Below, piece by piece: positions 7,295-7,753 of a stretch of 64,000 nt of DNA. Below the pieces are notes generated by a model, which saw only the letters and a list, made by a program, of their open reading frames with translations, was not told the origin of the DNA and did no database searches. Numbering within the stretch: the stretch's first letter is position 1; each line of letters begins with the position of its first letter. The DNA is from Scyliorhinus canicula (taxonomy: Eukaryota): the NCBI RefSeq assembly GCF_902713615.1, contig NW_024055444.1, forward strand, positions 62,001-126,000, written 5' to 3'. Both the position numbers and the translations under genes were made by a program.

Positions 7295-7753
7295 GCAGCT
7301 CTCTCGGTGCTCTGTATCACAGTGTGTGTAATCCTCACCATGTTCCGGTTTCTGTACAGCTCTCTCCGTGCTCTGTATCACAGTGTGTGTAATCTTCACC
7401 GTGTTCAGGTTTCTGTACAGCTCTCTCCGTGCTCTGTATCACTGTGTGTGTAATCCTCACCATGGTCAGGTTTCTGTACAGCTGTCTCCGTGCTCTGTAT
7501 CACTGTGTGTGTGATCCTCATCGTGTTCAGGTTTTTGTACAGCTGTCTCCGTGCTCTGTATCACTGTGTGTGTGTGATCCTCACCATGTTCAGGTTTTTG
7601 TACAGCTCTCTCCGTGCTCTGCATCGCTGTGTGTGTAATCCTCACCATGGTCAGGTTTCTGTACAGCTCTCTCCGTGCTCTGTATCACTGTGTGTGTAAT
7701 CCTCACCATGTTCAGGTTTTTGTACAGCTGTCTCCGTGCTCTGTATCACTGTG
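7295..7753 (-). repeat. Tandem array of 23-RSS units (~61-bp period; 7 complete, 1 partial)
   Basis: Heptamers (plus-strand starts) at 7747, 7686, 7625, 7562, 7501, 7440, 7379, 7318. Nonamers ACAAAAACC or ACAGAAACC at 7715, 7654, 7593, 7530, 7469, 7408, 7347. Every complete unit has a 23-nt spacer. Confidence 0.95.

Follow-up and report, generated by a model that had tools for sequence, protein, structure and literature searches.

What is a row of complete V(D)J recombination signals (RSS) doing behind a single V gene segment? In the window, i.e. the whole 64,000-nt stretch of DNA analysed here, one V exon is followed by seven complete signals with 23-nt spacers (23-RSS) and an eighth that is partial. 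The locus raises the questions of whether this array is real, which of its units recombine, and whether the additional units are kept by selection or are merely tolerated.

The host exon (8058-7754, minus strand) is a NAR-TCR supporting V-delta exon. It is leaderless, follows a phase-1 intron with the acceptor AG at 8060-8059, and has an open frame. The NAR-TCR cassette to which it belongs, referred to as cassette A, is encoded on the same (minus) strand, and its NAR V(22)-(12)D(12)-(23)J set lies 3.7 kb upstream of the supporting V. The NAR-TCR V exon occupies 12615..12904 (approximate limits), with a 22-spacer RSS behind it. The D segment (12225-12211) sits between two 12-RSS, and the NAR-J with its 5' 23-RSS is found at 11774..11870 (J 11831-11774, RSS 11870-11832). 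A splice donor is located near 11773, and this exon is spliced onto the supporting V. The lack of a leader, the splicing to NAR J, a CDR1 cysteine (...YSGFCQYTVHWYRQ...) and the position downstream of a rearranging NAR V-D-J all identify the exon as a NAR-TCR supporting V. The published NAR-TCR cassette is built alike, with NAR V-D-J followed by a leaderless supporting delta V with a CDR1 cysteine, as described in an elephant shark survey (PMC1845163). In the translation, Trp and Ala occupy the two canonical Ig-fold cysteine positions. Despite these substitutions the V is seen in rearranged, spliced transcripts, as an exact contig in run X18 and as a 97% identical paralogue in run X20. A protein search with the V open reading frame returned one weak teleost match from a database without shark relatives.

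Other repeats were noted in the surroundings. A SINE-like dispersed repeat of ~200 nt is found many times, at 812-1004, 9388-9490, 13383-13580, 23907-24099, 31516-31703, 61275-61439 and 62565-62757, with the cassette intron among these places; its copies hold no RSS-like site. A 24-bp tandem repeat of ~77 copies (GGAGGGTCAGGCTGGACTGGAGTG) spans 51397-53202 in a GC-rich block with strong GC skew (50-56 kb), and a C-rich block is located at 40-46 kb of the window.

The RSS array behind the supporting V (array A) starts directly 3' of the V exon. On the minus strand, 7753-7325 holds seven complete 23-spacer RSS, head to tail at a period of 61-63 bp. Tandem Repeats Finder delimits the array to 7296-7758 with a period of 61, 7.6 copies, 92% matches and a score of 768. 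The head-to-tail order and a unit length within 10-100 bp place it among the minisatellites. A scan of the whole window for heptamer-N23-nonamer with at most 3 mismatches located the seven signals at 7715-7753, 7654-7692, 7593-7631, 7530-7568, 7469-7507, 7408-7446 and 7347-7385, all on the minus strand. Window-wide the scan found 16 RSS-like sites against 0.91 expected, a count that none of 100 shuffles reached.

All units are encoded on the minus strand and share one layout. Unit 1 (7693..7753) comprises a CACAGTG heptamer (7753-7747), a spacer (7746-7724), the nonamer ACAAAAACC (7723-7715) and a linker (7714-7693). CACAGTG is also the heptamer of units 2 (7632..7692), 4 (7508..7568), 5 (7447..7507) and 6 (7386..7446), giving five copies in total, while unit 3 (7569..7631) has CACAGCG and unit 7 (7325..7385) CACTGTG. 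The nonamer ACAAAAACC is found three times (units 1, 3 and 4), and ACAGAAACC in the other four units (2, 5, 6 and 7). All seven spacers are exactly 23 nt long and the linkers between units measure 22-24 nt. Unit lengths are 61, 61, 63, 61, 61, 61 and 61 bp, and the extra 2 nt of unit 3 fall in the CA run. The partial unit 8 (7324-7295, minus strand) consists of a CACTGTG heptamer and a spacer with two changes, without a nonamer. Only the heptamer of unit 1 abuts a coding segment. Units 2-7 adjoin linker, and there the V frame is closed by a TGA at 7714-7712 (minus strand), the first three bases of linker 1, which is retained by any join at units 2-7. These results agree with a preliminary description of the locus in most respects. 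It had assigned the V to a NAR-TCR cassette, and this is borne out by the leaderless exon, the CDR1 cysteine, the cassette layout and the NAR-J splicing in transcripts. The seven 23-RSS plus partial unit that it listed, with their period, heptamers, nonamers and spacers, were recovered by the repeat finder, the RSS scan and the unit table. Its restriction of length changes to the linker CA run matches the same table, and the in-frame TGA that it read after the first nonamer is the one at 7714-7712. Its statement that joins at units 2-7 would be non-productive follows from the sequence, as all of them retain this TGA.

A decayed, inverted partial unit adjoins the distal end of the array (7259..7293, plus strand). 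It comprises the 3' part of a spacer, a nonamer-like stretch and the 5' part of a linker, and is 77-83% complementary to four of the direct units. Together with 7296-7330, the segment 7259-7293 makes the junction palindromic, and a stem of 13 bp could form; the second array of the window (array B, see below) has no counterpart. A fold-back event may lie behind this junction. No large inverted duplication encloses the V and its array in the window, where the 35-nt inverted partial unit is the only such element.

The array might be an artefact of the assembly, the real locus having one RSS or some other number of units. Contigs from short-read DNA runs were aligned to 7200-8100; they break inside the array, and the number seven rests on the assembly. 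The seven units, however, are all mutually distinct, so that a collapse or inflation during assembly is unlikely. An independent DNA run of this species supplied a 492-nt contig that is exact over 7200-7376, a stretch with the distal flank and junction, the partial unit and unit 7; other contigs of this run cross the border of the V and unit 1. Tandem units are also present in contigs longer than one period in four species in total, and the window holds a second array. In the three other species (organisms E, C and D) the contigs on the array exceed one period and thus show the continuity of nonamer, linker and heptamer. In organism E, a close relative, the distal flank and the junction are present as well. 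An artefact is therefore highly improbable.

Which unit recombines was read from runs X18 and X20, which behave as RNA and were analysed as assembled contigs. In X18, one contig matches the V exactly over 8048-7757 and then turns non-germline. In X20, a 592-nt contig runs from the NAR-J of a paralogue into a supporting V with 97% identity, the fusion being at 8059, and continues in frame at 7757 into a J region (...YEKLLFG). Both junctions lie at most 4 nt from the first heptamer. Since these transcripts join D/J in frame at the first heptamer, unit 1 is shown to be a working 23-RSS that gives functional NAR-TCR delta chains, and V genes of this type are expressed as part of spliced NAR-TCR delta chains with a productive rearrangement. 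Array sequence occurs in no X18 or X20 contig at all, though the V is covered. Joins at distal units were not seen among the assembled contigs of the two runs, and this is not evidence of their absence, because rare forms are lost from contigs and RNAs bearing the TGA would escape notice through nonsense-mediated decay.

By sequence rules, units 2-7 look RAG-competent. The heptamers of array A fit CACNRYR in seven of seven cases, all with CAC, and all spacers start with AT. In a high-throughput study, what mattered most was this purine/pyrimidine pattern, and position 4 discriminated least (PMC9723617). Both nonamer types of array A keep purine-A/T-purine at positions 4-6, the nonamer rule of a second source (PMC12711392). 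An ACA flank is common to all units. Under the 12/23 rule, 23-RSS do not recombine with 23-RSS. As all units are 23-RSS, no recombination among them is expected and the array should be somatically stable.

The window contains a second cassette (cassette B) with an array of its own. Cassettes A (13192-7295, minus strand) and B (21321-25830, plus strand) lie head to head with ~8 kb between them. With respect to a given D-J-C cluster, joining has to be deletional for one cassette and inversional for the other. The supporting V of cassette B (25185..25484, plus strand) is ~87% identical to that of cassette A and has become a pseudogene, its frame interrupted by a TGA at 25250-25252. Array B (25485..25830, plus strand) follows it with five recognisable units and a decayed sixth (5.5 copies). 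One of its heptamers lacks CAC (CGCAGTG) and one of its nonamers is ACAGGCACC. Its unit 1 shares a CACAGCG-ATG variant with unit 3 of array A. In cassette B (25484) and in some paralogous supporting V genes in runs X25, X19 and X1, the CA run is separated from the first heptamer by an additional G (...CACACAG/CACAGTG). The other V-associated 23-RSS of the window, at 5238 and 49780, are single, and arrays are found only behind supporting V genes.

Sequence identity between the two cassettes is ~87% for the supporting V and 89-90% for the arrays, compared to 78% for the NAR V, 68-76% for the NAR J and ~74-80% for the intron. The block of V and array was compared over 7296-8073 and 25171-25837, and the homology ends at the distal array end. 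The higher identity of this block suggests exchange between the cassettes (gene conversion) or a younger origin of the block. A derivation of the unit from a dispersed repeat or SINE was also considered and is rejected for the window, because the unit is confined to the two arrays and the neighbouring RSS have unrelated spacers.

Copy number in other species was approximated from contig depth. The summed depth over the array was divided by that over the V, which makes the ratio independent of coverage; contig depths are not copy numbers, and only the orders of magnitude of the resulting ratios count. Read in this way, organism E has roughly 11 units per V, organism D roughly 16, organism A, the window's own species, roughly 42, and organism C roughly 930. 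The window itself has 6.5 units per V, with 7.6 and 5.5 copies in the two arrays. Copy number thus varies between loci and, by rough depth, between species, as is typical of minisatellites. In one run of organism C (X34), the summed depth reached ~78,000 over the unit (7324-7757), against 100-200 over the V; one loose end in this run is a Nextera adapter, which calls for caution about the make-up of the library. The ratio for organism C implies thousands of unit copies. According to these rough depths, the unit behaves like a satellite, and in at least one species its abundance does not follow the number of V genes. A metagenome scan for the RSS unit gave no match. The preliminary description had proposed searching for arrays at paralogues and orthologues; they are present at the paralogue in the window (array B) and in three other species. 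Their recurrence argues against pure chance, but common descent explains it.

To characterize the variation among units, 12 full units of arrays A and B were aligned over 56 fixed positions, a small sample with little power to detect weak constraint. Differences from the unit consensus in array A amount to 2/49 in the heptamer, 4/161 in the spacer, 3/63 in the nonamer and 9/119 in the linker. Heptamer and nonamer together show no extra constraint over spacer and linker (Fisher's exact test, p = 1.0 for array A and p = 0.58 for array B). The spacer, normally the least constrained part of an RSS, is the best-kept part of the array A unit. Array B, behind the pseudogene, differs from the consensus at ~6% of positions, compared to ~4.6% in array A. 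Units differ on average at 4.3 positions within A, 6.4 within B and 5.3 between the arrays, and no column is fixed between A and B. The pattern of variation fits neutral turnover, and selection on the RAG motifs fits it less well.

The reading that has slightly the better chance of being right is that the array is a neutral or nearly neutral minisatellite seeded by the V's own 23-RSS, in which unit 1 works and units 2-7 are tolerated dead-end decoys. In the ancestral V, one CA run would have stood just 5' of the heptamer and another ~61 bp 3' of it, and slippage or unequal exchange involving these runs would have produced head-to-tail copies of heptamer, spacer, nonamer and 22-nt flank. Before each heptamer, at the V end and in every linker alike, the sequence reads ...ACACA, and the sole length variation is found there, which points to an origin by CA-run slippage. 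The array would then have travelled with the duplicating NAR-TCR cassette, with exchange of the V-array block keeping the cassettes alike while the array grew and shrank in a satellite-like manner. Unit 1, abutting the coding end, would yield the functional NAR-TCR delta chains, and units 2-7, if cut, would give dead-end joins bearing the TGA. A distal join would leave the proximal units intact and nearer D/J, and unit 1 could still be joined later, given a remaining 12-RSS partner. For this reason the extra units probably cost little, and the array would thus be tolerated, not selected. This neutral origin is favoured by the lack of differential constraint in both arrays, by an array about as intact behind the pseudogene V, by the exchange or recent shared origin of the V-array block with its zero fixed columns, and by a labile copy number that ranges from roughly 10 to roughly 900 units per V between species. 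The use of unit 1 in transcripts and the lack of array sequence in X18 and X20 are likewise in line with it. On the other side, seven of seven units keep CAC and conform to the heptamer rule (PMC9723617) and to the nonamer rule (PMC12711392), which is striking for a neutral repeat, though a CA run regenerates CAC. Arrays also persist at the paralogue and in at least three other species. Their lower divergence between the cassettes, relative to the intron, could be due to constraint instead of exchange, and the constraint test with its 12 units had little power.

Functional readings, among them the landing pad, the decoy set and the retry system proposed in the preliminary description, have to be weighed against this neutral origin. 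The seven RSS could enlarge the RAG target presented to the D/J recombination centre, with joins subsequently stepping inward to unit 1. Capture would commit the allele to the cassette, and a distal join would put units 1..k-1 beside the remaining 12-RSS partners. Nested secondary joins would then replace dead-end distal joins until unit 1, the sole potentially productive join, is reached. Units that all look RAG-competent by sequence and cannot recombine mutually, leaving the array somatically stable, would suit such a process. A NAR-TCR chain needs this V, which competes with many other V genes, and the arrays are restricted to supporting V genes here, with single 23-RSS at the other V genes, and recur at the paralogue and in other species. 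Against this, the process requires several free downstream 12-RSS partners, and the assembled contigs showed no distal-unit join. Nor does it predict that linker and spacer are equally conserved, that the pseudogene cassette keeps its array, or that a species carries ~900 units per V. Stepwise joining after capture is therefore regarded as rather unlikely. A related proposal in the preliminary description, that the array is a retry system, fails on logic: the TGA leaves unit 1 as the only unit able to give an open frame, and unit 1 is cut once, so that the array adds no productive trials.

The distal units could also have been selected to absorb RAG cuts, lowering the NAR-TCR share or blocking RAG scanning past the cassette. 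The in-frame TGA directly after the first nonamer and the match of the distal units to unit 1 in sequence quality would serve this purpose. If the V is deletional, scanning from D/J would meet the distal array end first, as may be expected from the RAG scanning model. However, a single weakened RSS would be a simpler dampener, and one scanning logic cannot fit two oppositely oriented cassettes. The X18 and X20 contigs show no distal cutting, and the neutral-looking variation applies here, too. A decoy effect is a mere consequence if the distal units are cut and not evidence of purpose, and a selected dampener is considered improbable. Finally, the A-rich nonamers, spaced every 61 bp, might keep ~460 bp free of nucleosomes and so open unit 1 without any distal cutting. 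The array spans ~2.5 nucleosome lengths, and functional nonamers are reported to repel nucleosomes (PMC12711392). The proposal is purely inferential, though. Four of the seven nonamers have their A-run interrupted by a G, and the keeping of whole RSS units, not just A-tracts, would be left unexplained. A role in accessibility is thus very unlikely.

As an RSS-seeded minisatellite, the array combines two known kinds of element, the RSS and the minisatellite. Unit 1 resembles the canonical single 23-RSS of TCR delta/alpha V genes, with CACAGTG at the coding end, a 23-nt spacer and ACAAAAACC, and is joined in transcripts. Unlike the canonical signal, it has six more complete copies and a partial eighth unit behind it, whereas the other V genes of the window have one RSS each. 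With minisatellites formed by slippage or unequal exchange the array shares the 61-bp period, units that are ~92% alike, length changes in the CA run and a varying copy number. It differs from them in that what is repeated is a complete recognition site of a site-specific recombinase, at the place where such a site works behind a gene segment. Extra RAG targets with possible secondary or non-productive joins are likewise provided by cryptic RSS (CA repeats, the embedded heptamer of VH replacement), and proximal signals survive a distal join, but the units described here are full RSS of consensus grade, located downstream of the true RSS and not inside the V. A search of the full-text literature found no published description of tandem RSS arrays or of multiple RSS behind the supporting V. 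The original NAR-TCR paper is reportedly that of Criscitiello et al. from 2006; its genomic figures were outside the scope of the search and could hold a prior mention.

The array represents a natural experiment, with seven near-identical consensus-grade 23-RSS behind an expressed V; work on RSS choice, on RAG scanning and on the price of decoy signals mostly relies on artificial substrates. Every join at a wrong unit is flagged by the stop codon of the array itself, and paralogues and related species supply other copy numbers. The array hence merits specialist attention as a natural substrate for RSS choice, with any function of the distal units being putative. If it is neutral, germline amplification of a full RSS, in one species to satellite scale, can escape purging, which would bear on the tolerance of genomes to RAG targets and on a possible spread of RSS. 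If it is functional, RSS copy number would be a new control of V usage. To our knowledge, NAR-TCR is the only known doubly rearranging receptor gene. Should capture followed by stepwise joining apply after all, the array would couple the second rearrangement of this gene to its own cassette and would be the first natural case of RSS copy number tuning V usage.
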